From Ylistrum balloti (Eukaryota): a stretch of DNA of 64,000 nucleotides. The DNA is taken from the NCBI RefSeq assembly GCF_031769215.1, contig NW_026781915.1:3472001-3536000 (forward strand), written 5' to 3'. Position numbers and translations under genes: made by a program. The notes beneath the pieces are model-generated. The model did not search any database, was not told where the DNA came from, and saw nothing but the letters and a program-made list of their open reading frames with translations. Shown here one piece after another: positions 16,486 through 62,235 of this stretch (position 1 is its first letter; each line of letters opens with the position of its first letter).

Positions 16486-17052
16486 CTACCAGCCACCACC
16501 TCTTGAGCCGTTGCCTCCGCCTCCTCCTCCATAGCCAGATCTCCCACTCGATCCATAACTATCCCCATCGTAGTTGTTTCTTCCTCCTCCTCCTCCGTAG
16601 TTTCCTCCTCCGTATGGTCTTCCACCACCACCACTTCCGTAGTTTCTGCCACCACTACCTCCGTAACCACCCGATGAACCATAGCTGTCACCACTTCCGT
16701 ACCCACGCCTTTGGAATCCATCACCACCTCCGTAGTTGGACCGTTGTTGGTAGTTGGACGACCGTTGTTGGTAGCCGCCACCATAATTCACTCTCCCGCC
16801 ACCAGGTTTTGACTCCGCTATCGAAACCTTTAGTCTGCGCCCGTCCAATTCATGGTCCATGGTAATCGTATTTCCTGCTTCTGAGGGATCCTTAAATGTG
16901 ATAAACGCGAACCCTCTTGACCGACCTGACTCACGATCCAAAACAATGTTGCATTCAAGAACATTGCCGTATTGTTCGAAATGGTCTCGTAGATCGCCTT
17001 CTGATGAATTAAAACTTATATTTCCGACATATAATTTACAATTGTCTGCCAT
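16486..17052 (-). CDS. RRM plus glycine-rich RNA-binding protein (CIRBP/RBM3/GRP-like), 188 aa, intronless CDS
   Basis: RNP2 LYVGNI and RNP1 RGFAFITF, then ELDGRRLKV, followed by a low-complexity Gly/Tyr/Arg tail (YGGGG, RG/RGG). Confidence 0.93.
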   Translation of the reverse strand: MADNCKLYVGNISFNSSEGDLRDHFEQYGNVLECNIVLDRESGRSRGFAFITFKDPSEAGNTITMDHELDGRRLKVSIAESKPGGGRVNYGGGYQQRSSNYQQRSNYGGGDGFQRRGYGSGDSYGSSGGYGGSGGRNYGSGGGGRPYGGGNYGGGGGRNNYDGDSYGSSGRSGYGGGGGGNGSRGGGW

Positions 17053-18497: not shown

Positions 18498-19469
18498 GCA
18501 CTTTCCAAATTTAAGTTTTTTGGTAAAAACAAGTAAATTCTTCTTTTGTAATAATACCGATAATCTATACATATATAACAGTATCATTGACACCAAGCAC
18601 AGGTTTAGGACAGAGTAATCTCCCTTGGTTTGGCATGTAAGCATGTGTGTAGGCATTAAAGATGGGGAATATAAAACAAATATATAGACGCTTTTGCATA
18701 ATAAATACCATATTTACAATATTAAAATGATTTTTCTCCTACGATGCCCAAACAAAATCTATCAACAAGAGATATTCTCGATAACAAATTGCAAGTAATA
18801 TGGCATCATGAGGATTGATTATTACTGTAAAGTAATAATATAGGAATATAGAGATAAATAATATAATTTAACAAGTTGTGGAATCGTAAGTAATTATTTA
18901 AACTTGTATAGTATGTGTACATACAAATTAATATTAAAATTCCTTCACTCATAAAAAATGATACAAAAAATCATTCAAATTAAGTAATTTATAAAATAAT
19001 CTATATAACAATGATAAAAGTATATTAACAATAGTGTAAGCACACAGTTGACAAGTACTGCAAGCATATAGAATACTGACATAACAGATATAATGCATAG
19101 GTTATACAAATTACTCGATATTTATCTAGAATTGATATCTAATGGTACACCATAACTTCTTTATTTCAGAGATATATTCATGTAAGAAGATATTGGCAGC
19201 ATTACTTGTTGGATTTGCCAATGAACACAGCACTTTTATTTTAAAGAGAATCACTAAATTATTGATAACAAAACCAACTGCTATTGTAAAGTTGCAGCAG
19301 ATATCTATATTATTCCAAATCTATCCTGAAACATGCAGTGGAGAGGACTATATACCTTAATACTTTGATAAAGGAATGACTGTTCAAAACACTTCCCTAC
19401 AAAAACATTTACCTTGTGTCTTATCAATGTTTCTTTCTCCAGACAATGTACCAAAAGTATAATATTCAT

Positions 19470-20050
19470 AATTCTCATTCTCCCAACAACAACATGTTTT
19501 ATCCAACATGATGTGTCTTTACAATCACATTTTTCTTTCTCTCTATAACAATGCATCTAATTCACCACAATGTGTCTTAACAATCATGTTTTTCTCTCTC
19601 TATAACAATGTGTCTAATCCATCATGATGTGTCTTAACAATCACATTTTTCTTTCTTTCTATAACAATATGTCTTATCCATCATGATGTGTCTTAACAAT
19701 CATAATTTTATTTCTCTCTATAAAAATGTGTCTAATCCATCATGATGTGTGGAAACAACCATATTTTTTTCTTCCTATAGAACATCACTTATCAATAGAA
19801 TGTGTCTTTCTCCTTAACAAGTTTCTCTCTATAACAATGTGTCTAATCTATCACGAAGTGTCTTAACAATCACATATTTTAACATGTTTCTTTCCCCTGC
19901 AGCAATGTGTCTCTCCATCTCCATGTTTCTTAACAATCACAAGTTTCTCTCTCCCTAAAGTAATGTGTAATCAATCACAAATTCTTGTACCACTCCTGTT
20001 TCTTTCTCTCTACAACAATATGTCTAATCAATCGCAATGTGTGAGCATAT
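19470..20050. repeat. About 59-bp degenerate tandem repeat (about 9 units), probably inside the Dab 3' UTR
   Basis: cca(t/a)catgatgtgtc recurs at 19503, 19619, 19678 and 19737. The unit reads ccatcatgatgtgtcttaacaatcacatttttctttctctctataacaatgtgtctaat. Confidence 0.85.
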
Positions 20051-21292
20051 CAGGCAATATGTGTAACAATGTGAAAATTAAATATCCATTAGCACCTCTC
20101 AATTAAACAGCACCGCAGACTTCAAAATGGAAATTTCAAATTTTCCATCCTTTATCTTAAATACATCACTTTGCTTTGTATATAATCATTAACCTTTCTG
20201 TTTTATATTATGGTTCCCATTTCAGGCTGCCCCTGAAAAGTTAATACTTCATTTAACAGTATCTCCCTGTTTTTAAAACTTTTAATTCAACTGCTGTACA
20301 TTACCTGCTCAGAAAGACCATGTGATCCTGTAATTTCACCACAATTTATGATAGGCACATAAGGATTCTAACCAACGTCTCTTAACTAAACACTTAGAAC
20401 TACATATCTTTTCAAAAATATATAAATTTCAGCAAAAAATATGCAATTATAAACCTTCACATCAAGAAAACTTAGGACCACTTTAATAACCATGACAGCT
20501 GGGTTTGTTGTACACAGCAGGTTCCTCCACTTGATGAGTATCACATTTTAACAATAAGGAACAAAATCATTCTTTATCATCTCAAATCTTGACAATCTAA
20601 TACAAAACCAACACCTTCACAATCCAAATACAAAATCAATTAGTAGTTTCTCACATTTCAACACCATCCATTTCAACCATATGATAAAAAATAGTCCTAT
20701 ATCATTTCTCACCTAATGTAGTGAGAGCAGTTTTGTATCGTCTCTATACAAAATGGTTGTGTATCTTCTCATACTTTACCTTATATCTAGTTACAAGAAA
20801 CTCTGTATTGTAATCAGATACAAAATAGTTCTGTGCCAGCAAAATCATTAACAATTTTAATTAAAATTCTATATATCACTTGTGTTCTACTCCTGGTCTA
20901 CAGGTTTACACACTCAATTAAGATATTTGAAAATATCATAACAACACAAAAATTAATGATGTGATGTAGGCAATTACAATGCAAAACAAGATGCTGATTG
21001 TAATAGTTCTTGGTCCAGTCTGAAATTAACCATTCCTTTCCATTTTGTGTGTCATTTAACACTATTAAAACAAAAGGTAAATAAAAAATCAATTGAATCT
21101 GGTCATGAAATTTTCTAAAAATAAAATGAGTACATTCAGTCAGTATTGAAGGCAGATGAAAGTTTAAAGGTATGGTGTGTAATAAAACACAGAATTAGTG
21201 TCCTGCATGCATTGCAATACATGTCTGTGGTAAAGGGAGATAAATCTGTCCAACTGGTTTGCTTTTTGCTCAACAGGTCACTTTGTGTCTCC

Positions 21293-24200
21293 TCAGGACT
21301 TTGGCTTGTTCACTACTGCATAGATCGGCTCCTAGGGAAAGAAATGGACCAATAAGACAACTGGTTGTGTGTTGTTCATACATATTATAAAACATGTAAT
21401 ATCAACATTAAATTATCATTTCATCAGGGAGGATTTTAGATCTGACCAACATTCATCTTATGTAACTTGAACAGTGACAAATAAAGCAGAAATGTGATAA
21501 CCAGCAAGCAATGTGTTGTTTTTTTTTTAAGTAAAAGCCAAGCATTGTTAGCTGCACCTGACAACATGTAACTAACATCATATTAATTAACAGTACAAAA
21601 CGACAGCCAACAGTAGTCTCACCTCAGTGCACAATAAAGGTCGTGTCACCTCATATCACTGCATTAATTCTGAAATAGGAGATCAGTGTTATAATAATTG
21701 GCTCCCATTTAATCACAATCACTTAAAGACTTACAGCATAATATGTTTTTAAGGACGAAAGGTCCGACAGCTGTCTGTAGAATTAACACCATGTAACCTT
21801 GCTATCAGGACTACCTATAGGACTGGACCAAAAATTGGTCTCAATATTGAAGGATTCTTTTAAAAATAACAAAACATACAGTGTAAAGGAACAAGAGGAA
21901 ATTTTGGAGAACTGGAATGAAGTCACCTTAAATTGCAAGGTGGTTACGATTTTGAGTTGGTCTTTAAGAGTGGCTTAAAAGTTCTTGAATATATCAGAAA
22001 GTTCATTCTTTCTGACAGGAGAGGGAAATGGGAAATTGACATAAGGGATAAATAGATCTGATTTTTAACATGGTTTCCAACATAATAAATATCAATCAGA
22101 CACAATGAGAGACATAAGTGCATATGAATTGTTAAGCTCCGATTAAACATGGTGCATATACAAAAAAAAAGGTTAAAACAGTCCTGCCCTTTGTAAAACT
22201 CTTTAAGCCAATGGATAATTTGAATGTTGATTATCAAGCTCTTGTAGACTGTAGATGATTTCAAAGTTTATATATAATACAATTTCAGGACGATGATAAT
22301 TCAAGATTGTCCTATACGATAGAAACTCTGTATTAGATCATGGATTATCCCAATATTGATCTGTGAGAATAAATTCTTAGAGCTTAATTTCAATGCAGTT
22401 AATCTGAGAGTAACTTTCAGTGGATAACTTTAAAATGTGTTTTTGTAGTTTAGTGTATCATTATGTGGTAATCTCAATATTATTCAGATTGTTTTCATAT
22501 CAAATAACATGATCATCAATATTCAAGACTGTCTCAATAATTAATAATTAAAGCAGAAAGCAGTTAACAGCAGCAAATAAACTACTCCATAGAAAATTAA
22601 GGTGAGTACATGCAGTTCTTAGTCCTCCTCTTGTCTTATCACTCTGGTCACACATATGATTATAGACTATACAAAGTAATATTAAGTAATACCTTTGTTA
22701 GCATAACTATTGCCCACAAAAATGATAACCCTATTCAGAGTGACTATTTCCAACACAAGATAATACCCCTAGTCAGAGTGACTTTGGTTTTGTCAGGGTA
22801 ATTATTCACTACACAAATACCCCTTGTCAGAGCGATTATTCACCAAACAAATAACAATTTCACATCCTTGAAAATTTACCAATCCTTGTCAATTCACACT
22901 AGGTAGAATATTATCACTATTAAGAGCAAGTGTAAATGATGCTCAGGATGTATTACATGGAAGCTTGGGGGTTTACTAAAGGCAGATTCCAATAAAATTA
23001 ACTGGTACCTACAACTATAGAGACTATAAACAGTTTAAAAGTACAAGCTACATTATACAATGTGACAAATTTCTCCCAGTTATAACTCCAACTTCAAAAT
23101 ACACTTGTCCACACTTAAAACACTGACTGATGACATACAGCCTATATTATCATTACTACCGATGAAGGGAAGGTGTGAACGACACACTTACTATAGTATT
23201 GAACAAAGTATTGATACTATTGTATTGAAGTATTCAAATAATCGAGTCAAGTATACAACGACCTCTGTGATTGGTCGGGGGCGGAGTTTAGACAACCTGA
23301 ATAGTTGATCTGACACCCAATTTGTTCCGGTAGGCGGAGTTAATGTACACTATCAGTTACATAACAATTACTAAGTAATCGCTGGAAAAATGTCCGACGA
23401 CGGCAACAGTACGCAAAATTTTCTTCGACGAAATTATGTCCGATACGAACGATATGGGGAATCCTGTTTTTGTACAAGGCGATGTGGTTGTGATGGATAA
23501 TTGTGGATTCCATCACCAAAGACAGGGAGAGCGCATTTTAAGAAATATGCTGAAAGAATATGGCGTGTCCCTGGTTTTTCAGCCGCCTTATTCCCCGGGA
23601 TACAACGTAACTGAATATGTATTCAATGTCATGAGACAGAGGCTTCGGGCAAATACCCGACTTGTGTCAGAATTTCTGGAACTTGCAGTAGTAAATGCTC
23701 TAGATATTCCGCCCCACCAACTTCAAAGTTTTTTCACATGTTGCGGATATGTATAATCTTATATAGTATATAAGTCCGTGGTATAATTTTCGATGGAAAG
23801 ATAAAAAATAAAATAAAAAATATATGGGACCACAGAATTCCTTTACTTTTTAATGCAGTATGAATTATCGGCATATATCAGGAGGTCCCAGGTAAATCGT
23901 AATTCTTTGTTACATATAATAGAGCTTGGGCTTAAACCGAAATATTTTGAGCCAACCCTTCCCCCCCCCTTTCAAAAAAACAAATAAATAAATAAAACTA
24001 GTACAGAATGACTATATGACTATATTCACTGTTAAGATGTTATGAATTCTCCGGTCCCAGTGATCTAACCTGTTGATATATATTTTGTACGTAAATTAGT
24101 TTAGTACTGAGTAACTTTCGTTTTCTCGTTGTACCATCGATGGAAAAGCAAGGTATCATTGGGTGTAGAACGAAACAAATGGGACTACCCAATTAGGTCT

Positions 24201-27200
24201 GATCTGAAGCCACCTGTGACTTGGACTCTTCCAATTAACCTCTCGCGACAGTCGAGTGTTTGTAAAATGCCGATGTCTGCACAGTATTTTTTCACCTGGC
24301 TCCACCCACAATCGATCTAGACTTGGCTCTGCCAATCAGAGAGCTTGTTGCATAAATTTAAGGAATTCGATTGGTGAAGTACTTCAGTACAATACTATCA
24401 ATACTTTGTTCAGTAATACAGTACTTGAAACGTTCACACCTTCCCTTCATCGGTAGTAATACAACCATCAATATACAGTCCAGAGTTAAAAGAAAGGTTG
24501 ATAAATGTAGGTCATGCAGTATACTTTTCCTTCTACAACAGGTATCTAGTATCAGATTGAAGGAAAAACATTATAAAATATTGCTTTATCAGATCATAAT
24601 TTTAATATTACTTAATCAACTATTAGAAACAAAGCATAACCAAAGACATTGCTGAGGAATACTTGCTCTGGAAAAGTTTGAGAAAGAAGGTAAAAGAAAG
24701 ACAGACATTACACTTGCGTAGAAGGTTGACTACACCTAGCCCATAAAAAGCTACGTAAAACCTACTTCACTAAACTGTTGTTTATCAAAGAAGTCATCAA
24801 AAAGACTTGTATCATCAAACTGAAATATAAAATACAAAAGGTGATACAACTTGAAACAATGCATTTATTAAGTTTAAAGATAAAGGATTAAAAGCAAAAT
24901 ATCTTTGTACCAGACAGACAAAGGTGACGTTAAGCAACAAAGGGACGCCAAAGTCACACCATACAGGCAAAGCTAAAGCCCTGTAGAGCAATAAGTAAAG
25001 ACAGACCAAGCAGCTGGCAGAATACAGATGGTCAGACCAGACATGTGAAACACACCAAAACATTCAATTCAACCCAACAGGCAAAGCTGCAATTCAAAAT
25101 TATACATGATCGTTATATTATCATTGATTATAGCCCACAAGAGTAAGTTTCTTATGACTTATAAATAATTTTGTGATAGCAAATCTTTGTATTTAAAGGC
25201 ACCTAAACCCTAAAGCATTAAATTTTCTAAGATGTATCTCTTTCACTCAGAGATTTTCTACAACTATCTTCCACAAAACTTCTGTCTATAGCTAAAGCAC
25301 TCTTATGAATATAGGAATTTCTACTTTTTTTGTTTTGTTTTTTAAAGACTTAATGTTCTCTGGAAACTTACCAACAGCTGACTTGTCATCATGTGGGATT
25401 GTAATCTACAAAACTCAAATTTATGTAAGCAAGCAAAAATTATGGAAAGCAAAATTAGTTCAAGTGAAAGGGATATGTACCAGCTTCTGACATTCAAAAA
25501 GCATAACTTGTATGTTCCTTTGTGAAGCCCTATCTAACAAAGGCATCAGATGTCTATCACTTACACCAATAGAATAATAATCCAAATTTGAGCATCAGAA
25601 AGATCACCAATCTGTGTAAATTACAGTGACCTATTTCACAACAAAATTAAATACTCTTTTGAAAATTCCAAATGTACATAAAGATTAATGAAAAAATCTA
25701 ACAAAGCTACCATCCAAGTCCATTATAAATGTCAGAATCTGATGTGAAAAGTTTGGAAATAATGTTAAGTGATTAAACACAGTGCTTTACAGGCATACAG
25801 GTAAATACATAGATGAAGGAGTGAAGCATTAGTAAGCTATAAATCTACAAGTCCACATATGTCGACGAGTGACGTCAATACACACCCACACTATACTGCT
25901 GAGAATTAAGACCATCATGCTCTGCCGTGATTTCTTGTTAGGATGCAGTTAGTAACAGCCAAAACAACCAACAACAGCTATTCTCATTTATTTTCATACT
26001 CACTCCAGTACTATTCCGCTTTTTCTTGGAATTTTTCCTAGAATTTCCACTTTTGAAATTGAAAGTGTCATTCAAACAATTATCAAACACTGCAAAAGGA
26101 TCATCTTTTGAGTCCAGATATTTGTCCCTGTTGTTATTTGTATTTTGTTGACTAGACATGAAAGGATCATTGGAATTAAAATCATCTATACTGAGAGAAC
26201 TTGGAAATCCATCAAATGATGAAGATGAAAATACATCCGTTTCTGCAAAAGGGTCCGAGTTGAGGAAGGGATCCTCAATCACAAATCTGTCCACCACAGG
26301 CACATTTTTTATCACATTGTCAGAGCTTGTTGATCCATTTCCATGAGATTCTTTATCCACATTATTTTTGGCAATATGAGATTCTTGTCCATTTGAATCT
26401 TTTGTGGAAATAGTTTTGTTTCGAGGTGGCAGTGGTGGGGAGTTGTTCACACTGTTGACCTTTGGCCTTGGCCGAGGTCGCGGCACTGGAGTATGTTGTA
26501 GGTTTGACACTGAATTACGAGGAGGCAGTCTGGGGGGAGAGTCAGGCTGTGGAAGAGTGGAGTGAGTGGAATTTGCAGCTGGGCTGCCACTGGGTCGGGG
26601 TGGTGGAGCAGGGGGAATAATCTGAGGCATGTCACGAGGTGTTGCCATTGAAGGTAAAGGGGGTGGTGGCCCTTCCGGTGATGGAAGGTTAAAGTCATCA
26701 TTTTCTGAAAAAGCCAAATCTTTAAATTTAGACTTGGAAGAACATGGCACATTGTGGAAGGATTCTGGCTTGGATTGACTGGAAATAGCAGGCTTGATAT
26801 GTGATGTATCGAAAGGATCGGAAGTTTTTGTTTGAAATGGGGAGGAAAAGTTTACCACTGCAGGAAGGGATGCATTGTCTACAGACCCAAATGGGTCACT
26901 GTCACTTGCCTGTGGCCCCTTTGGCACTTGTTCAGTTCTTAACTGGTTGATACTTTTCTTTGGCTGAGCACTCAACTCTGCAAACAAGCCTTTTGGGCTG
27001 AGGGCTGTTTTATCCTTGGTCCCTAATTCACAGAGGTCACTGAAGGCATCACCTGTACCAGCTTTGTTCTCCACTTGGGGTGCCTCCTCCACTGTCAACT
27101 TGACAGGGGCCAGCAGTGGTTCATCAAACAAAGCCCCACCTGCAGTGTTTCCATTAGAGAAGTTGGCAAACCCTCCTGTAGGTGCTGCATTGGCAAATGG

Positions 27201-30200
27201 ATCCTCACCAAATGGGTTAATGGCAGGGGCAGGAGCAGCAGAAGGCCTCTGAGGAACTGGTGGTGGAGGTGAGAACTGCAATGACAGAGTACATGACTGC
27301 AAGTGTGTTACAGAGAATTAAACCTAAAATAAGTCAATAATAATACATCTGGGTTTCTTTTTTTTCAACAGTATTCTGAAGAGAGTTTACAATTATATGG
27401 TTATATCAATGGTAAACTACAATGTGCAAGATCTTGGACTGAGTATCCTTGCAAAGCAAAAAAAACAAACAGGGAGAGTTTACAGGTAGTTTTAACACAT
27501 TAAAATGTTGACAGAGTTAGATCTATAAGAGATATCACACAGTAAACATCAAACTGACAGGAAAACATTTACAAGAAGTGAAATCAATGCAGATGTCACA
27601 CTGTGTACATCACACTGACAGAAAAATATTTACAAGGAGTGAAATCAATGCAGATGTCACACTGTGTACATCACACTGACAGAAAAATATTTAAAGTGTA
27701 CAGGGAGCTCTATCAATGTAGATGTCACACAGTAAACATCAGACAGACAGGAAAATACTTACAGGGAGTTAAATCAATCTAGATATCACACAGTAAACAT
27801 TAGACAGACAGGAAAATATTTACAGGGAGTTAAATCAATCTAGATATCACACAGTAAACATCAGACAGACAGGAAAATATTTACAGGGAGTTAGATCAAT
27901 GTAGATGACAGTAAACATCAGACAGACAGGAAAATACTTACAGGGATCTCTATCAATTTTGATATCACACAGTAAACATCAGACAGACAGGAAAATATTT
28001 ACAGGGAGTTAGATCAATGTAGATGACACACAGTAAACATCAGACAGACAGGAAAATATTTACAGGGAGCTCTATCAATGTAGATGTCACACAGTAAACA
28101 TCAGACAGACAGGAAAATATTTACAGGGATCTCTATCAATGTAGATGACACACAGTAAACATCAGACAGACAGGAAAATATTTACAGGGATCTCTATCAA
28201 TGTAGATGACACACAGTCAACATCAGACAGACAGGCAAATATTTACAGCGAGTTAGATCAATGTAGATGACACACAGTAAACATCAGACAGACAGGAAAA
28301 TACTTACAGGGATCTCTATCAATTTTGATATCACACAGTAAACATCAGACAGACAGGAAAATATTTACAGGGATCTCTATCAATGTAGATGACACACAGT
28401 AAACATCAGACAGACAGGCAAATACTTACAGCGAGTTAGATCAATGTAGATGACACACAGTAAACATCAGAAAGACAGGAAAATACTTACAGGGATCTCT
28501 ATCAATTTTGATATCACACAGTAAACATCAGACAGACAGGCAAATACTTACAGCAAGTTAGATCAATGTAGATGACACACAGTAAACATCAGACAGACAG
28601 GAAAATATTTACAGGGAGCTCTATCAATTTAGATATAACACAGGACACAACAGGCTAGACAAAATGTCATGCTAAAACAGCAAAATGTTACCTCTTCTGC
28701 ATTTCTATCAACAATTGTGACAGTTGAGTTTTCCTAATAAATACAGTGTAAAACAAAGCTGATTGTAGACATGAGTTTCCACATGATGTCATGACTAATA
28801 ACTTGTTGCATCGAAGAACTTGAATTATTTCATGCTATTTTACCAAATATCTTCAAGAGAAAATAACTTGGGCAGTCACAGGTTTATAAATTACCATTAT
28901 CCAATTACCTGAGGTGTTCCAAATGCAGGAGGCCCTCCAAATGGGTTTGGCATGCCTGGTTGAGGTGGAACTCCAGCCACAGGAGCTCCAGGAAAAGCTG
29001 CAGGCTGCAAACCTGTGGACACTCCAAATGCTTGGGGTACTGGTGACACTGAGGGTCCAAATCCTCCAGGCATTTGCGGATTTTGAGGAGGAAACCCTCC
29101 AGGTATTTGTGGGTTTTGAGGAGGAAACCCTCCAGGTATTTGCGGGTTTTGAGGAGGAAACCCTCCTGGCATCTGTGAGTTCTGGGGTCCAAAAAGATTC
29201 ATGATGTCATCTTTGCCTTTAATGACTGGCTGTGTCCCAAACAGGTCAATATCTTGGAGATCTGACTGACCACTCTGGGCAGAACCATTGGTGGTTGATC
29301 CAAAATCATTATCAAACAAGGAATTATCAGCAGACTTTTGATCAGCTTGAGAGGTTGAACCAGTTCCCCAGGGATCACTACCTGTACTTGCTGCTGGTGA
29401 AACAGCAGATGGAGTTCCTGCTGCTAGGGCGTCAAAGTCAGTCTCAAACTTGTTCATCTGCTCTATACCCTATAAACGTATAAACACAGTTTCATTTCAG
29501 TAATAATTACCATAACTTTAGTATGCAAATATGGTACCTACACCAATCTTTGTATCCCAAAAACAAAAGATTCAAAAATCCTGCCCTCCCTACCATCCAT
29601 GAGCCTTCACTGCAGGAACATAGAGTGATCTCCCTTCCTCTTTCCTTTACGGCTCCCGGAGCGGGCGGACGTGCTACTCTGAGCTGAGTGCTTTCCTTTT
29701 TATTTGTAGTATTATCTTCCTTGTAGCTGAGTAATTTATTACTCGGTTTTGCTTAAACCCATCTCCCTACTTAACAGTCTATTGCAGACGTTATTTTTGG
29801 CTTATTTCCGGCTTTAATTCGGCTCTATAAATGTATAATTTCCTGCTTTAATTCGGCTCTATAAATGTATAATTTCCTGCTTTAATTCGGCTCTATAAAT
29901 GTATAAACACAATATTGACATTGATGTCTCCAACAGTGGTATAAGGACACTTAGAATCACTACACAACCAATTCTACAGACCTGTCCAATTGTCTCCAGT
30001 TCTGTCTCCAACTCCACTAGGCTATTTCCTGACTTGTCAATCTTGACCTCACCATTGTTCGATGGCACCTGTAACAGAACATACCAAGTAATCAATTAAC
30101 TATGCTGCATCTATATATCTATATATATAATTAGTGTTCTAGATGATCTGTTCCAGATCTAAAAGCAAAAACCTGTTCTAGAATCAATAATATTATAGTA

Positions 30201-33200: not shown

Positions 33201-35676
33201 AGTTATAACACTATCCAACAGACTTGCAAATAAACAACAATAAGAAAGCATTAGCTGGCTAATAGTAGTCAGAAGCACAAGAACTACACACACCAAGAGC
33301 ACAGTGTTGAGAACTTACGGCATAAATGTGTTCTGGACTATCCTCTATGGGTGCTCCATTGGTTGGCACCTGGTTGCATGCACATCATTAGTTGAATACT
33401 TATTTATAAAATTGAATATCTATACTACAATCATCAATTAGATTTGAGTTCATAATTAAGTCATTCCTTTACTAGCATCATATATTTTTAGCAACATTCT
33501 GGATACATGCAGGTTGGTACCAGAAATTTCTCTTTGCCCCAAATAATTTGATGACATTGGACAGAAATGCAGTAACAATTGGTGTGTTGTTATTACATTT
33601 TAATCATAGAAACATTTAAGAGAGGTGGTAAATGTTATAAAGGATGTATAAATTAATAAATAGCCTGCATCTTAATGGTATTTAACTTGGCTACCTATAG
33701 TCCCATCAGGTGTAGAACTTTTAAAGCATTCATCAACAAGTCTGAACATAAATTTCATTCATTTTTGATGCCAATCTGGAGACTTCATCATAATCAAACA
33801 TGACATCTACTTGCCAGAACTGTATAGATTTGTACTTTAATACACCGCTGGAAGAGTAATTGGATTGTCTTTAGGGACCATCTTAAACATTACTTTTTCC
33901 TTAAAGTTTTATAGACAGGAATGCATATAATTAAGTATCCATTCAAGTTTTTGAAGATCTTCTCAATCTAAAGCTCCAACAAAATTAGGTCTTCACCATT
34001 AAAAGGGACAAAAGTATTCCATTTTTTATTCTTTTTCTGATTTGTTCACCCATTATGAAAATATTTGGAGCTGTAGATTTGACCTTAATCTGTAAAACAG
34101 TCATTGAAACTTTCTGAGGACTGAATCAATTTTCTCTCCCCCATTTCCATAGGCCCTTACCTGGTATACTGGCTCGTCATCCGTAGAAGATTCTGCACCA
34201 AGTTCTCCTCCAAGCTTGATAACTGTGAAAAAATACTGTCATTATTCTTTTTTCTTAAGCCATCATAAAACAATTCCAAATCATTAATACATTTCTCCTA
34301 CATCAGATCTAGAATTACAATAACATTTTCTCACAAAATTCATAGGGCGATTCATTTTTCCTAAGGAAAGGATATTTACAACCTATGCAGGGTACTTAAA
34401 AGATAGTTTTCACATGATATATGCCAAAAACAACAGGGTCATATCATCATTTGATGCAACCTAACCATGTCACAATCGGATAAATCAATAATATCAACAC
34501 ATATTTATCTGACCATTGATGATGGCACAATGTACCAATATGGAGTTCACAAAAGCAACTTCAATCTTTAACTTAGATTTGAATTGGTATTTGGTCACAA
34601 GCTAGACTCCTTATGTTTTTTCTGGATGTAATTTTTTCATAGTAATCTATTTGCAGAATATATACGAGGTTTATTTTTATCTTCTTCTAATTTACTTAAA
34701 CCCTTTATAGGAATATTTTAGATGAATAAAAGACACCTAACTAGTATAAAAAAAATCCTCTGTAAACAGGAAAACAAAATCCTTAGTAGGAGCATTTTGT
34801 TCCTGCTTCATTCTCTAAGATTTTAAACAAAATATTTGTAATGTGAACAAGATTTACATATAAAAGGTGAATTCCTCTAAAAATCCTTTAATGTTTCCTA
34901 TATCAAATTATCTGGACTAGGGATACCAAGGCCAGACATCAAATAGAAAACAAGCAGGTCAGTCAGTCAACATAAACCAAGAGAAAGAGATGATGATTGT
35001 ACTAGTATTGACCAAGTTTCCTTATCCTTCAGGCATGAAAGCATGGACAGAAAGACAGACAAACTGACAAACAGACAGACAGAGTGGCAAATATACATGC
35101 TCCCCCTAAAATGTTTGGGGAGCATAAAAATCTGGAAACACAAAATATTTTTTAAAATGCTCATTATGATCTATGAATTCTTAGTAATAACTTTAAGTTG
35201 GCCTTATAACTTCAGAATATACCATTGGGATCATCTGCTGGTTTGGTGTCAATCTTAGTCTGTTCTTCTTCTTCCTCTGCCTTCTGTTTGGCCTCCTCCA
35301 TTTCTTTTTTCTTTTTTTCATAGACAACTTGGAAAAGGTCCCTGAGAGTTAGAACCAAGGCTTCAGCCTAAAAATGAAATGCCAGTTACAGCAAAAAGAT
35401 AACAGGAAAAGAGACTGTGCCTAACATACATGTTATTCATAGCAACACAGCCTCTGCCTAACAACAATGCATAGCACTTCTACAGTAACAGGCCCTACAT
35501 TTGGACATGCGCCAGATTAAAACGGTCTTCAAAGGGATACTCTAGAGAGCTGCTTATTATAACAATCAATTAAAGCCTCAAATGATGTGAACATAGGAAA
35601 AGGGTGATATCAATTTACAACAACCCTCTAAACTTCACTGCACAGGAATAACGAATTTTGATGCCAGGACATAAAG

Positions 35677-35708
<32 letters not shown>

Positions 35709-37528
35709 TTAAAACGATTACTAATATAATACGGCACATGCCAAAGTCACATTTGTAGTAATTCTATAGTATCTCTTTACAATATTTTCAATGACAGACG
35801 GGTGTAATTAAGACAAGATTTATCTTGTTCAATTAACATACAGCTTTCTCGGTCTTGATTCCGAAGAATTTGTGTGTTCCATCTCCTACTCCAAAGATAT
35901 AACCAAAGGCACGGCTATCTGTGACATCCCTGGATATAAAGGATATTTTGTGGACAGCATGTGTGTAGTTCACTACCTGTAAAGGATCGTAGGATAAAGG
36001 GAATGATTAATGATTAAGTTACTCATTCACTCAATTTTACTGTTAACAAACTGTTAAAATCAATATCCTTTAAGCAGTACAATCCATATAAATTTTACAC
36101 CAGTGATCTGGTGTTGTCTTCAAGCCTGAAGAATGTTTTTATCAATGATGAGGATAAATGATGAGTGACATATTAAATTTACTGTCTCCACAATCTTCCT
36201 ACAAATTTTTTTTCTACTAAACAATACTTTTTATACATGTATACATGTGAGGGATATGCATATATAATTCATAATCAGTTACCCAGTACACATACAGGTC
36301 ACTAGACAAACTTTGATAAGATAAATGGACAAAGGTCTGTAACTTTCTATAGTGGTGCAACAGATTGGACTTCAGTAAGCACCAACCCAGAAAGTAATCC
36401 TTACACATAATCTGATAATTGTAGCTAACAAAATACAGGAGATATAGCATCCATGAAATGATGCACAGACTGACTAACCAACTGATCAACTGACAAGTAG
36501 ATTGGTCTCCTAACATGGCTAGGAGATTATCAAGAGCAGACAGAAATACATACAGCAGTCTTAAGGTCAATGAGTTTGATGCCCTCCTCAGACACATTAA
36601 CAATGATCCTCTGCTTATGTTGTCCAGATGCCTTTACCGAGAGCTTGAGTCTGTAGATTGTCTCCTGGCACATTCTGTCACCTCGGGCATCAGGGACATC
36701 ATCCACGCCTATCAACTTGGCATTGAAGTTCACACCCTCACCTTGAAATCTTGTGGGATCATTCTTGTCTACACAATATATACAAAATAAAATCTTATTT
36801 GTAGAATCTTTAAACGGAGAGAATATTTTAACTTTCTGCATACATTTAAGCAAGCTAAATATATTTTATATATATCGGGATATATTCTTGCAGCAAGACG
36901 TTATGTATGAGATAATTGTCATTTCAACCTCGTTACAAGTTTTTAGACTTCTCCTTTGGGGGTTTTGGAAATGATATACATTTTTATTTCCTCTGTCATG
37001 GCTATTCAGACTATTAGTGTTATGGATAAGAAACTAAACTTTCATTTTACCTGTCCTGACAGGTTGCTGTGGTATTAGCCTTTTTTACCCTTATCCTTAC
37101 TGGTTGTTATATGTTTTGGGTTATGTTGGGAAATGTTTCCATTATCAGTTAACCTCCTTTCTGACAGGACATTTCTGCAACTATCAACCGGACCCATACC
37201 TTGCCTGTTTCTCTAATTACAGGCAGTTGCTGATTTGAGGCTGTGGAAGGGAAACAAACCTTTCCTTTTTACCTGATAAGTTTGAGTTGTTCTGGGGATA
37301 TAGATCAGAGAAGACATTTTTGCCTCTTTCCTGGCAGGTTCTTTTAGTGTTGTAGAGGGGAGACGTACCTTTCTTTTTCACTTGCTTCCTTACAGGTTGT
37401 GGTTGCTTTGGGGCTGTCGATGGTGTAGAAGATGTGGTACTAGTGGCAGTGCTGGAAGGAGATGATGGTTCACTACCCACCTCAGAAACTGGCTGGGCCT
37501 CAGGTACAGGCTCTGTTGTACCCGACAT
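21293..37528 (-). CDS. Dab: Disabled (Dab) family PTB-domain endocytic/signalling adaptor, about 908 aa
   Basis: Exons 37528-37369, 36768-36554, 35976-35842, 35367-35223, 34222-34161, 33369-33319, 30068-29982, 29469-28909, 27275-26004, 21331-21293. All are GT-AG with compatible phases (2727 nt). Dab-type PTB domain ([54 protein letters not shown]), YQVP and YAVP motifs, NPF/DPF/DPW motifs and PxxPxR motifs. The last exon is less certain than the rest. Confidence 0.92.
23156..24456 (+). mobile_element. Internally deleted IS630/Tc1/mariner DNA transposon (1301 bp) in the last Dab intron
   Basis: TIRs about 90 bp, outer 26 bp perfect (ctaccgatgaagggaaggtgtgaacg), TA on both flanks (23154-55, 24457-58). 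Retains a transposase C-terminal fragment. Confidence 0.92.
23436..23756 (+). pseudogene. C-terminal fragment of a DDE transposase (IS630/Tc1/mariner)
   Basis: [10 protein letters not shown] ... [13 protein letters not shown] ... FFTCCGY. The second catalytic D (23496) and the E (23613) are separated by 38 residues. The DNA-binding domain and first D are missing. Confidence 0.88.
27510..28650. repeat. 61-bp minisatellite, about 18 copies, in a Dab intron
   Basis: The unit acagtaaacatcagacagacaggaaaatatttacagggagttagatcaatgtagatgacac was read directly. Confidence 0.97.
29060..29175 (-). repeat. 33-bp coding tandem repeat in Dab, ([12 protein letters not shown]) x3 plus a partial copy
   Basis: Seen in both DNA and translation. 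Confidence 0.95.
29811..29906. repeat. 34-bp perfect tandem repeat x2.8
   Basis: gctttaattcggctctataaatgtataatttcct starts at 29811, 29845 and 29879. Confidence 0.95.
32340..33045. mobile_element. Pearl/HINE-like element with about 4 internal 144-156 bp core units
   Basis: cttcagac/cttctgac at 32464, 32620, 32764 and 32909. It ends with ggacagac...aagctcacc, and the same core occurs at 6050-6400. Confidence 0.65.
34960..35130 (+). mobile_element. End of a pearl/HINE-like element: (GACA)n microsatellite plus terminal hairpin
   Basis: A gacagacaaactgacaaacagacagacag run, then the hairpin atgctcccc (35097-35105)/ggggagcat (35117-35125), then an A-run. Confidence 0.6.
35677..35704. repeat. (TA)14 microsatellite
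   Basis: Read directly. Confidence 0.95.
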
Positions 37529-55383: not shown

Positions 55384-58300
55384 TTAGATTTTTGTTTCCC
55401 TTGTATTGTTGGTGTCAAGATCAGGGTTAGTCTCCATGCCCTCTCTCAAAGGTTCCAGTTCAGACTCACGGAACTCGCTACGCCCAAGTTCCTGTTTGAC
55501 CGTTGAGGTGTGGCACTCATTTTGACAAGGAGCCTCAATGTCTAGGCCACCCATTTGGTGGATCTTCCAGCCACAGATGAAGAACCCTCCTCCCAGGGCC
55601 ACCAACATGGTGACCACTACCCAAACATTGTATGTCATTACCACCAGCATTAGTATATAACTACACACCATCTGGACGACGTACAGCAGCGTTTGTAGCA
55701 GGTGCTCACGACTCCGTATGGAGTACCTATAACAGTCAAACAATATGGTCTTCATCAGACATGATACAATTACATATCAAACCTGTTTTACAGGACCTTA
55801 ATACCTAAATAACCTGAAATGAAGTAATGGACATGAATGTGATCCTGTGCAGAAAAAAAATGTAGGTCAAGATTTTTTCAAAGCAAAATTACAATATCTT
55901 GTTATCAGGGAATATACCCATGTAATAGTTTTGTGTATTACATGTGCAATAAGTAAAATATTAGGATATCAAGCTTACAAAATGAAATTATGTCACACAC
56001 ACAGACTGTACTGTGATATAACTATGGAGACAACTGATTTTTTTATCAAATCTAACTGACTTAAAGGTTGATGAGGAAATGTCTGTTTTCTCCAATATTC
56101 GCTATGTGATTAAAAGGATCTTAACTTTGTTCCATTTGATATGTGATTTTATGAAACTTGTCACAAATGTTTATATATCTGTCAAAAATTTTGACAATTA
56201 ATCATATGGAAGAACACTGTCCATCTGTCATAAACTTATATTTGTCCATAAATGTCCTAACATAGTTTTCAGCCAATCTTTTTCAAACTACTGTTGTGTT
56301 TTCCTGTACAACAGTTTGATTAAACTGTCTTTGGAAGAGTCAATGACTGATTTTTCATACTGTTAAACTTATAAGATCTTTTCTGTCAGTTTTCTTGTCA
56401 AACTTTGCAGACTTTATAACTATGATATGATTATGAAATTGTGTTTGCTTACATAACAGTTCGATTGAACAATTTTTGAAAGAGTTATTTCCCTTCATTT
56501 TCTTCACATTTCAAGTTTGTATGATAATTTCCTTCCTCAGTCTTTAACCAATTAATTAAAAAATAGGTAAGCTTTATAATCATTACATGGAATTGTGGTA
56601 TGCTTTAGTTTATCATTAAAATGTATAGCACTGTTTTCCACATTAACATTTTAGCTTGTTACTCTTTTATCATTTCCATATTGTAATCTTTCTGATATGA
56701 TAAATCATAAATACTTCTTAGGCATTGGGCTGGTGTACATTGTTCCATTTTGCAGTATTTTTATTCATTTAATCTTGCTATAGACACACTATAATCTGAA
56801 GAATATGAAATTACAGTTTACAGAGACAGGGGATAAAGTAAACACATTAAGAATGACATGGTCTAGGATGGAACAATATGTTTTCTTCAATATTAGCAAA
56901 TCATAACAGCTTTTGATCATAGATATATGAACATATGACAGTGTAATAAAATACACTAAGAACACTTGTGAGGATAAACTTCCTGTATATCATGTTAAGT
57001 AAAAATGGTCCATGCTCATATTTATACACAGTGTTAATAATATTGGATAGATGTTTGTGCATGTCTTTGTGTATCAATGCAATGTTTTTTATAACAACAT
57101 AAGTGAGGTTAGTGTGATTACCCTTACAAAATATATTGATGTAAAATAGACTGATTGCTGATCATTGCAGGAAAAGAGATAGAAATCTTAAGTTGTAAGA
57201 GAGAAAGAGTGAGCGAATTTGTAGGTGTAGGAGAGACAGAGATTTGTAGTAATTGTTGTAAGAGAGTAATTGTGTATGTGCAAGCAAGAAAGAGAGTTTG
57301 TGAGAGAGACTTTGTAGATGTGAATTTGCAGGTGTAGGAGATAGCATTATGAAGCAGCTGTATGATGTAAGTGACCTGATTTGTTGGTAGGTGTCTGCTA
57401 GAAGGTGAGTGGTGTCGCTAGTCTCAGGCTCAGCCGATCTGTAATGGCAAAGTGCTGCTGATAAGTATATGTGACCTAATTTCACTAAGAGAAACTCCGG
57501 TTGACTTGAGACAAGAACTTCCTAGAGACTGAATAGAGATGTAATGGAATTTCCCAACACTAGAGACTGTGTGAAATACACTATTATACAGGTAATGTTC
57601 ATATTAAAGGGAATGCCCTTTAACAAGGCAAATGTGTTTAATAGGTTATAGAGTACAACTTAAACAGAGAAAAATACTATCTTCTCACTGTAAAATTTAC
57701 ATGTTAATCAAGGTAAAGTGTACAGATTTATCCAGAAAAAAACCACAAGTTTAACAGTGTGAAGTATTGCCCATGAAAAGTGTACAGACTTAACAAGGCA
57801 TAGTATACTGTTTCAACGGAGTGAAGTGTACTGTTTTAACAGAGTAAAGAGTACAGTTTTATCAAGGTAAAGTGAACAGTTTTTTTTAAAAGTAATCTAT
57901 TCTATGATATATTTATCAATCATGGTAAAGTGAACATGATAAATCATACTCTCTAACAGGGTAAAGTCAAGTCTTCTAATGGGATGGACTTTAACATGTA
58001 ATCATGGCAAAGTGCATCATACATGTCACACTTTAAAAAATTTATAATGGTGAAGAAACCTTTTTAAATGAAAATGTGTATTGTAGGTTAGTGCACTTTG
58101 AAAAAAAAATCAAGTATATAGAAGTGTAATAGTATGATAATGGTATCTGTATTATTTTGCAAGGAACATGTATTTGTCATAATGTGAAAGGAATGCATGA
58201 ATTAAGTGCAATCAAGAAATATGTCATGAAATTAAAGATGTATATAGCGCTGGGTATATATATATGTACGAGTCAGTTCTTGTCAGGATTCCACTACAAT

Positions 58301-61300: not shown

Positions 61301-62235
61301 TACCCAGTAAATATAGAACATCATAGGAAGTACATTGGGGAGGGGTTCTCACTGTCACCTCTGTGCTTAAATGTTCAACATCCTGTCAATTAAAGGCAAA
61401 ATTTTTAACAGAAATATTTTTTCATAACAAAGATTGACTAGTTTGTGAATGGAAATGTAGACTCAACTTTTGACTTCTACCTGGTAATTCTGACCTTCAA
61501 TTAAGTGATTTCAGAGCAGATTTTGATCATGTGGCTGAATCATACATGAAGCTTCATTAAAAATATTCATAAGTAATCCAAATAATATAACTACTGATAT
61601 TTTTTAAACATCTGACAAGGCGACCTTGATTTTTTGGTTGTATATTTCATTTGATTATAGTTAGCCTTTCCTTTAAACATTGTGTTCGTTAAAAGAGAAA
61701 TAATCTTACCACACATTTGACTTGGGTAACTTGACCTTCATATTAATACAGCTGACATTTGTTACAAATAATCATTTGTTTTTTGTTACCGACCATTAGC
61801 CAATACATTATTTTGTGTGACTTACAGACCAATGGATTGTCAATATTTCAGATGGATTTCAACATAACTTCAAAGAAAGAAAAATTATCTTTATAGGTAC
61901 TGGTGTTAAATTCTGACCCTGAAATCTAAAATGACATCCTAAGGTGGGGAATTGGTACTTAAATATCAATGTTAAACTGCAGTTGGCTATGTCAATATAC
62001 TTACATGCTCTATTGCATGGTGTTCAGCATTCTCATGGCCCGAGTGGGCAAAGTGGTCATGATAATGTGTTTGATGTAAAATACTATGTTCCTGTTGGTC
62101 AGCAGGTGTGGTGGTCATCATGTTATGATCATGGTGATGGTGTTGATGGTGACTGTGATCCATGATTATAATTACAGTGATGGTCAGTACACACAGTATC
62201 AACAGTACACGTGGTCCATAGTAACGTAATCTCAT
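55384..62235 (-). CDS. SLC31A: CTR/SLC31 family copper uptake transporter (248 aa from ATG 62235, or 224 aa from ATG 62163)
   Basis: Exons 62235(62163)-62005, 61265-61193, 58507-58408, 55726-55384, GT-AG with phases 0/1/2 consistent. His-rich N-terminus starting MDH, MYFNF..VLFES, TM1 ending YEAVKYLR, TM2 MxxxM (MLVVMTYN), and Gly-rich TM3 (LGGGFF). Confidence 0.93.
57150..57560. other. Compositionally distinct purine-rich insert with internal direct repeats (possible retroelement/LTR remnant)
   Basis: Repeated ttgtaagagag and gtgtaggaga motifs with strong strand skew. No diagnostic termini were found. Confidence 0.3.
57700..57970. repeat. Highly degenerate minisatellite of about 24 bp
   Basis: Recurring aa(g/c)(g/a)gtaaagtgtacagtttt-like units. 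Confidence 0.5.
58578..60657. repeat. 40-bp minisatellite, about 52 copies, in a CTR intron
   Basis: Unit ttccctgggtgaagatgatctatttggtgtaaatttctag with a few recurring variants and one 16-bp partial unit near 58915. Confidence 0.99.

Follow-up and report, generated by a model that had tools for sequence, protein, structure and literature searches.

A conserved C-terminal mini-exon of scallop Dab, a candidate phosphotyrosine dock

The Dab gene and its tail exon

The window analysed here is a stretch of 64,000 nucleotides from the scallop Ylistrum balloti (RefSeq assembly GCF_031769215.1, contig NW_026781915.1, positions 3,472,001 to 3,536,000 of the forward strand), and on its minus strand lies the gene for Dab, a known signalling and endocytic adaptor. 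An earlier note, made from these letters alone, had proposed that the gene ends in a tiny exon encoding an EPIYA motif like that of the bacterial effector CagA; this tail exon is our main subject, and we consider below that it may serve as a phosphotyrosine dock. A word search with the largest exon led to Pecten maximus "disabled homolog 1-like", and that protein led on to Dabs of scallops, oysters and other invertebrates, while the top matches of a whole-length comparison were Dab proteins of molluscs and other animals. When the Y. balloti RefSeq isoform X1, "disabled homolog 1-like" (XP_060081336.1/P0134; 922 amino acids), was compared with the window by tblastn, most exons matched at 98-100% identity, from the ATG at 37528 through residues 911-922 at 21331..21296, which identifies the window as the Y. 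balloti Dab locus; two micro-exons (34223..34146 and 33372..33304) matched at only 87-88%. The PTB/PID domain (PF00640) scored 33.3 bits on XP_060081336.1 (Pfam cut-off 20.9), and the Dab sulfatide-binding motif (PF21792) scored 28.7 bits on the window exon 36530-36853 (cut-off 27) and 24.7 bits, under this cut-off, on the whole protein. With its PTB domain, whole-length orthology and DPF, NPF, proline-rich and tyrosine motifs (7 DPF, 2 NPF and many PxxP in isoform X1), the gene has nothing unusual for a member of the Dab family.

The coding part of the tail exon (21293..21331, minus strand), directly preceded by ggtccatttctttccctag, reads GAG CCG ATC TAT GCA GTA GTG AAC AAG CCA AAG TCC TGA, from its first base at 21331 to the stop codon at 21295-21293. 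It encodes a 12-residue tail with the core EPIYAVVNK, whose tyrosine is Tyr914 of isoform X1, and is preceded by an acceptor with the pyrimidine tract tttctttccctag (21332..21344). Upstream, the large exon ends with AAT AGT ACT GGA in phase 0, its last base being 26004, and is followed by the donor gtgagt (25998..26003), which leaves an intron of 4,672 nucleotides (26003..21332). The 13-codon phase-0 exon with its clean acceptor, EPIYA motif and stop, and the donor GGA/gtgagt some 4.7 kb before it, are therefore all found where the earlier note had placed them, and its proposal that Dab ends in a tiny terminal coding exon corresponds to the junction in the RefSeq model. Isoform X1 matches the exon in 12 of 12 residues by tblastn, the junction of 26004 to 21331 is already annotated in the Y. 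balloti isoforms X1, X3 and X4, and the same junction and tail are annotated in isoforms of Argopecten, Mizuhopecten and Pecten, an agreement far beyond chance. We regard both exon and splice as almost certainly real. This is the last coding exon and, putatively, the exon with which the transcript ends.

Our search for RNA runs of Y. balloti returned a single run containing the locus (79% of words), which is genomic DNA because one of its contigs runs through the intron, and which is therefore uninformative on splicing. In the genomic DNA run of a second individual, no difference was found within 21293-21331; just past the stop codon, this individual carries G>A at 21285, the nearest difference, and T>A at 21212. 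An AT-rich putative 3' untranslated region extends over 19160..21292 (minus strand), with AATAAA at 19240-19235 and 19165-19160, and contains a tandem array at 19501-19880 of 59-nt (or 116-nt) units in 6.6 copies with 73-77% matches.

The remaining exons are all on the minus strand, and most of them were delimited by tblastn. The first coding exon (37370..37528) opens with the ATG and is followed by three exons for the PTB/PID domain with the sulfatide-binding motif (36769..36551, 35976..35842 and 35367..35218; tblastn and Pfam). The two micro-exons named above, with an intron between them, carry the tyrosine motifs DEPVYQVP (Tyr238) and EHIYAVP (Tyr255), which are kept in all 11 of the aligned orthologues. 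Next come a further exon (30068..29982), an exon for residues 286-472 with Gln/Pro-rich repeats of the form PPQNPQxPGGF (28909..29469; a 100% tblastn match) and an alternative micro-exon of 14 codons (28692..28733; tblastn and sequence), the skipping of which fits an isoform that, compared by length, is exactly 14 residues shorter than X1. The large exon of 424 codons (26004..27275) holds DPF, NPF and proline-rich motifs; tblastn places residues 486-910 at 27278..26004, and the true acceptor sets its start at 27275. The C-terminal region of the protein is of low complexity, poorly conserved and without Pfam domains, which suggests that the C-terminal half carrying the tail would be disordered.

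The tail across animals and isoforms

In the fetched Dab proteins we searched for the pattern [ED]P[ILV]YA[TV]VNK, and all 53 of 53 matches lay 2-11 residues from the C-terminus, in orthologue models that come from several annotation pipelines. Tails of the four scallop genera have K or R before the final S; among oysters, the tail reads EPIYATVNKFK in Crassostrea, EPVYATVNKIK in Saccostrea and EPVYATVNKTN in Ostrea. The chiton Liolophura ends with DPVYATVNKNKPPDGTLDLL, the brachiopod Lingula with EPIYATVNKPKKPT, the nemertean Lineus with EPLYATVNKQKREVDLL, the hemichordate Glandiceps with EPLYATVNKPKK, and the amphioxus species Branchiostoma floridae and B. lanceolatum with EPLYATVNKPPKN[QH], while in the cuttlefish Acanthosepion the pattern also stands at the C-terminus, with support from assembled mRNA contigs. 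The motif whose presence in related orthologues the earlier note had put forward as a test is accordingly found in other molluscs, a brachiopod, a nemertean, a hemichordate and amphioxus. Comparison of 15 distinct tails gave EP[ILV]YA[TV]V in 14, the exception being Liolophura, which has Asp for Glu (DPVYATV). A full-length alignment of 11 sequences has the same residue throughout at P912, Y914, A915, V917, N918 and K919, and almost throughout at E911 and K921; over the preceding few hundred residues, invariant positions are only scattered. A search for any protein with the tail, using just the final 45 residues of Lingula Dab, gave five candidates and no match other than the query.

Gene models that read through the last intron place it directly before the Glu, at STG/VSM in scallops (Mizuhopecten P0011; Logan open reading frames P0003 and P0004), FET/VSLF in cuttlefish and QQ/VG in amphioxus. 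Logan contigs of about 4.8 kb from the runs SRR9970001, SRR9970004 and SRR9970007 contain an unbroken open reading frame of 1130 codons ending in the tail, and a fourth contig (SRR32924703) also ends in it; since these contigs are free of introns, the tail is present in mRNA. That the tail is a conserved functional motif appears very probable to us. Its simplest history would be an origin before protostomes and deuterostomes parted, followed in several lines by loss of the motif or by failure to annotate it.

Other C-terminal ends were also observed. In Liolophura (P0023) and Lineus (P0040), the tail exon continues to a final DLL; gastropod Dab models (P0041, P0043, P0052, P0053, P0069, P0114 and P0115) end in SLLD or SLFD, and the Ptychodera model (P0045) ends in DLLGNL. 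Such ends may represent a second C-terminal motif, perhaps clathrin-box-like, which would come after the EPxYA tail or in part take its place. A disabled-like protein of the spider Uloborus diversus (P0216; 469 amino acids) ends in GEESPYATIVKKSSVSE, perhaps a relative of the tail (YAT[IV].KK) that has degenerated in this arthropod; nothing similar was seen in the other arthropod models.

The tail is apparently subject to alternative splicing. Isoforms (X2) that end in STGN or GPQN and do not carry the tail exist in all four scallop genera (Ylistrum, Argopecten, Mizuhopecten and Pecten), and oysters show the same pairing, with one isoform ending in QNGS and the other in QNGS-EPIYATVNKFK; a search for a contig encoding the short oyster isoform (P0155) returned no record. 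Scanning downstream of 26004, we found a single AG/AAY-stop site with a pyrimidine tract, at 21669. It would open a candidate cassette exon of 47 nucleotides (21623..21669, minus strand) that reads ctcctatttcag, then AAT TAA, and ends at CTGAG/gtgaga; a shorter form is possible with a donor at 21650/21649. Inclusion of this cassette would end the protein with Asn (STGN) and make the tail exon untranslated, so that it is a candidate splice switch. Having considered from the STGN isoforms that the tail exon might itself be an internal cassette with a further exon downstream, we dropped this possibility, the sole plausible site, 21669, being upstream.

Shorter isoforms gain the tail in two ways, through donors internal to the large exon or via an optional exon. 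The internal donors are of the GT type (CAA/gtgcca after TEQ, intron from 26927) and of the GC-AG type (CAG/gcaagt after VPKGPQ, 26904-26909 on the minus strand, intron from 26909), and both match junctions of short Pecten and Argopecten isoforms. The optional phase-0 exon of 18 codons (24766..24819, minus strand; flanks tatttcag and gtaggt), located by tblastn with Pecten maximus, has 79% identity to residues 589-607 of the Pecten maximus isoform X1 (P0140) and is a candidate in Y. balloti. The tail looks like a module that is joined by splicing to several protein bodies or left off.

Within the last Dab intron, an insertion of 1,303 bp (23154-24456) is absent from the second individual, whose contig joins 23153 to 24457; the skipped stretch starts with TA and ends with AG, and two letters are common at the joint. 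It holds a DDE_3 transposase remnant (open reading frame 23436-23756; PF13358, E 1.4e-11) and has a word depth of 140-2,000x against about 10x in its flanks, and it looks like a polymorphic, high-copy element of the Tc1/mariner type. Upstream of Dab on the same strand lies a neighbouring gene with open reading frames at 55384-55755 and 61987-62235 (both minus). One open reading frame of this gene gives a match to Ctr copper transporters in their C-terminal part (PF04145, E 7.7e-12); that at 61987-62235 is rich in His and Met (MDHSHHQHHHHDHNMM…), like the N-terminal metal-binding region of Ctr1, and has no Pfam match. On the opposite strand, at 16493-16732 (plus), weak proline-rich tblastn matches to the Dab query fall in a 2-kb bin with a raised GC content (0.40) and may mark an exon of another gene downstream of Dab.

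A predicted phosphotyrosine dock and its rivals

Scallop Dab has four tyrosines after the PTB domain, three of which stand in the context E-x-[IV]-Y-[AQ]-V. In the tail, the residues around the tyrosine (Glu at -3, aliphatic at -1, Ala at +1) agree with the substrate pattern of Abl and Src kinases discussed for p140Cap, the first two of them with the Abl consensus (PMC3561454), and Y-A-[TV]-V-N-K fits the Csk-ligand pattern pY-[A/S/T]-x-[V/I/M] together with the extension V-N-K, as judged against the sequences in PMC5071372, PMC6277618 and PMC2999339. We propose that the tail tyrosine would be phosphorylated by a kinase of the Abl or Src class, and that the phosphorylated Y-A-x-V-N-K would then dock an SH2 domain, most likely that of Csk. 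Csk, an inhibitor of Src-family kinases, would thereby be brought to the receptor complexes organised by the Dab PTB domain, where it would close a negative feedback loop, and through the stop-carrying cassette at 21669..21623 the cell could make Dab with or without the dock. The tail core itself would be a short linear motif dating from early bilaterians, always on its own mini-exon and added to a long disordered region.

Taken as a whole, the explanation we consider best, to which we give slightly more than an even chance, is that the ancient tail exon encodes a phosphotyrosine dock, most likely for the SH2 domain of Csk. That the tail would be an SH2 dock of whatever kind is rather probable; that Csk would be its main reader is a tentative assignment, somewhat short of an even chance. 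We place Csk first because three independent Csk ligands share Y-[A/S]-x-V-N-K with the Dab tail. As best read from these patterns, other SH2 readers would come second and phosphorylation-independent functions, either as a YxxPhi signal or as a ligand of the PTB domain, well behind, because both leave the invariant P-2, A+1, N+4 and K+5 unexplained. The docking site of Csk or SHP2 type that the earlier note had suggested is favoured by what we infer here, and in a sharper form, with Csk placed over SHP2.

The alternative that survives best, although we consider it unlikely, is a phosphotyrosine dock with a main reader other than Csk, be it SHP2 (Corkscrew), a Src-family SH2 domain or another SH2 protein, so that the tail would act like an immunoreceptor tyrosine-based inhibitory motif (ITIM) or CagA EPIYA-C, or as a promiscuous hub. 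Many SH2 domains accept the hydrophobic +3 residue of pY-A-x-V; AnkA EPIYA motifs bind SHP1; the EPIYA grammar has been compared with that of ITIM and of the related switch motif (ITSM) in a 2026 perspective (PMC13457649); and, in the part of the literature on bacterial EPIYA peptides covered by PMC3593179, these bind an unusually large number of SH2 proteins. However, the invariant N+4 and K+5 are specific to the Csk-binding subclass (CagA-A, BepD and BepE Tyr37) and to pYSSVNK of the membrane adaptor Cbp/PAG, the SHP2 sites differ (EPIYATIDD in CagA-C, and BepE uses Tyr64), and ITIM requires I/V/L/S at -2, where the tail has an invariant Pro. Membership in the ITIM class (I/V/L/S-x-Y-x-x-L/V; PMC13457649) was rejected on account of this proline. 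We also rejected a Grb2 pYxN site, the Asn being at +4 and not at +2, and a PDZ ligand, as the last residues vary (KS, FK, IK, TN, LL, PT, KK and NQ).

Quite unlikely in our view is an unphosphorylated sorting signal of the YxxPhi type (YAVV or YATV) for AP-2 mu2, which would provide an additional endocytic handle on a Dab2-like clathrin adaptor. Y-x-x-V fits the YxxPhi signals of AP-2 mu2, YAVV and YATV both meet the pattern of Y-x-x-bulky hydrophobic, and 7 DPF and 2 NPF motifs are typical of endocytic adaptors. Such a signal needs the Y and the Phi residue only, however, leaving P-2, A+1, N+4, K+5 and the E/D at -3 unaccounted for, and is too loose to be diagnostic; moreover, Val is a weak Phi residue, and signals of this kind normally act on the tails of membrane cargo rather than on soluble adaptors. 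Very unlikely is an intramolecular pseudo-ligand (xPxY) of the protein's own PTB domain, by which receptor binding would be auto-inhibited until the tail is displaced or phosphorylated. The Dab PTB domain prefers unphosphorylated NPxY, to which EPIY bears a superficial likeness, but Glu or Asp replaces the Asn of NPxY in every species, and variation lies on the N-terminal side of the motif, the side that is read by PTB domains, whereas the residues C-terminal to the Tyr are invariant. Finally, a chance open frame or annotation artefact without function, for which it speaks that RefSeq isoforms are computational models and that the RNA-run search gave genomic DNA only, has negligible probability and is effectively refuted by orthologues and mRNA, since the tail is identical in four scallop genera, models made by different pipelines keep its core in Mollusca, Brachiopoda, Nemertea, Hemichordata and Cephalochordata, and it occurs in assembled mRNA contigs.

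Several points weigh against a Csk dock in the Dab tail. Both the phosphorylation and the binding of the tail are deduced from sequence. Bacterial EPIYA peptides bind many SH2 proteins promiscuously, at least in the account of Selbach et al. given in PMC3593179, and sequence likeness therefore does not single out Csk; YAVV, moreover, also fits the YxxPhi endocytic signal. In Y. balloti, the junction of 26004 to 21331 rests on gene models and orthologues, the search for RNA runs having given genomic DNA only. None of the listed models of Mytilus, of venerid and unionid clams, of gastropods and echinoderms, or of Ptychodera, Ciona, arthropods and fish Dab2 shows the tail. The tail is thus either dispensable or often missed by annotation; since an exon of 13 codons is easily missed, these absences are weak evidence of loss.

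If the proposed dock is real, the cassette ending in Asn and stop would give rise to one kind of Dab that brings Csk to complexes of lipoprotein receptors and other NPxY receptors, and one that does not. This suggests a route of recruitment for Csk or another SH2 regulator in animals possibly lacking PAG/Cbp, and predicts that Dab-Src signalling has a feedback arm which may be absent from vertebrate Dabs. For annotation, it means that an exon of 13 codons may escape notice, as in the Mizuhopecten model with its read-through of the intron, and that Dab models of other phyla without the tail are worth checking again.

Comparison with Csk ligands and bacterial EPIYA motifs

Within the same protein family, the known system to compare with the tail is the tyrosine cluster of vertebrate Dab1, made up of YQxI and YxVP sites read by the SH2 domains of Src-family kinases, Crk and Nck. 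Scallop Dab keeps EPVYQVP and EHIYAVP, and tyrosine signalling through it is therefore to be expected. The vertebrate sites, however, are internal and of the YxxP type, whereas the tail is a C-terminal YAxVNK, which was not seen in any vertebrate sequence that we fetched.

Among endogenous Csk ligands, Cbp/PAG is bound by the Csk SH2 domain at ISAMpYSSVNK (PMC5071372), and its human sequence continues as VNKPGQ (PMC6277618). The PAG1 site at pTyr314/317, the canonical membrane anchor of the Csk SH2 domain, has Y-[S/A]-x-V-N-K-P in common with the Dab tail, in which Pro is often found at +6. The two differ upstream of the Tyr, with SAM in PAG and EP[ILV] in Dab, and in setting, PAG being a transmembrane raft adaptor and Dab a cytosolic PTB adaptor. 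Pragmin (EPIYAES) and p140Cap (EPLYAAF and EGLYA) contain endogenous EP[IL]YA motifs like that of the Dab tail, which are phosphorylated by Src-family, Csk or Abl kinases and bind the Csk SH2 domain (PMC4946704, PMC3593179, PMC3561454); for p140Cap, EPLYA binding to the Csk SH2 domain and phosphorylation by Abl are both described (PMC3561454). Unlike the Dab tail, neither has V+3, N+4 and K+5 or matches EPxYAxV.

The closest likeness is to the bacterial effectors. Their sites with experimentally demonstrated phosphorylation include EPIYAKVNK at Tyr899 of CagA (EPIYA-A), EPLYAQVNK in BepD and EPLYATVNK at Tyr37 of BepE (PMC2999339, Tables 1 and 6), and are substrates of Src-family and Abl kinases (PMC3593179). 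Once phosphorylated, CagA EPIYA-A/B and BepE Tyr37 bind Csk, while SHP2 is bound by CagA EPIYA-C/D and BepE Tyr64 instead (PMC3593179). These effector motifs of the KK type (CagA-A, BepD and BepE Tyr37) share the nonamer E-P-[IL]-Y-A-x-V-N-K with the Dab tail, and the nonamer of BepE Tyr37 equals the tail core of Lineus, Glandiceps and Branchiostoma Dab letter for letter. The likeness to CagA to which the earlier note had pointed thus extends past EPIYA to the whole Csk-binding class EP[IL]YAxVNK. The effector motifs also lie in a disordered region, as suggested for the Dab tail. On the other hand, the Dab tail is an endogenous animal sequence, present as a single copy at the extreme C-terminus and on its own exon, while the effectors carry tandem repeats; there is no homology beyond the motif, and for the tail both phosphorylation and Csk binding are predicted. 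As part of a spliced animal gene, the tail does not belong to the bacterial effector class but is to be seen as an endogenous counterpart. Our literature searches (EPIYA with Disabled, and tail strings) found no paper linking EPIYA to Dab or describing the Dab tail, and the tail strings turned up only in a paper on bacterial effectors.

Reviews ask which host protein the bacterial EPIYA motifs imitate, and name Pragmin (PMC3593179). The pattern EPxYAxV, defined for the bacterial effectors, is depleted in mammalian proteomes according to Selbach and colleagues, as far as their work is related in PMC3593179, and the window tail EPIYAVV matches it. It is possible, although rather unlikely, that the Dab tail would be an ancestral bilaterian dock for the Csk SH2 domain, predating the PAG/Cbp of vertebrates, surviving in amphioxus and absent from the Dab of vertebrates (or at any rate from the fish Dab2 models that we looked at), and that CagA, BepD and BepE would imitate its grammar EPxYAxVNK in their EPIYA motifs of the KK type. 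If this were true, EPxYAxV may be depleted in mammalian proteomes precisely because its readers still recognise it. Gene family and exon annotation were already known; what we would file as new is the tail as a putative endogenous short linear motif of the EPIYA and Csk-ligand kind. In Dab, an adaptor carries the full nine-residue pattern from scallops to amphioxus, which makes it a tractable endogenous example of the motif that CagA, BepD and BepE have in common.

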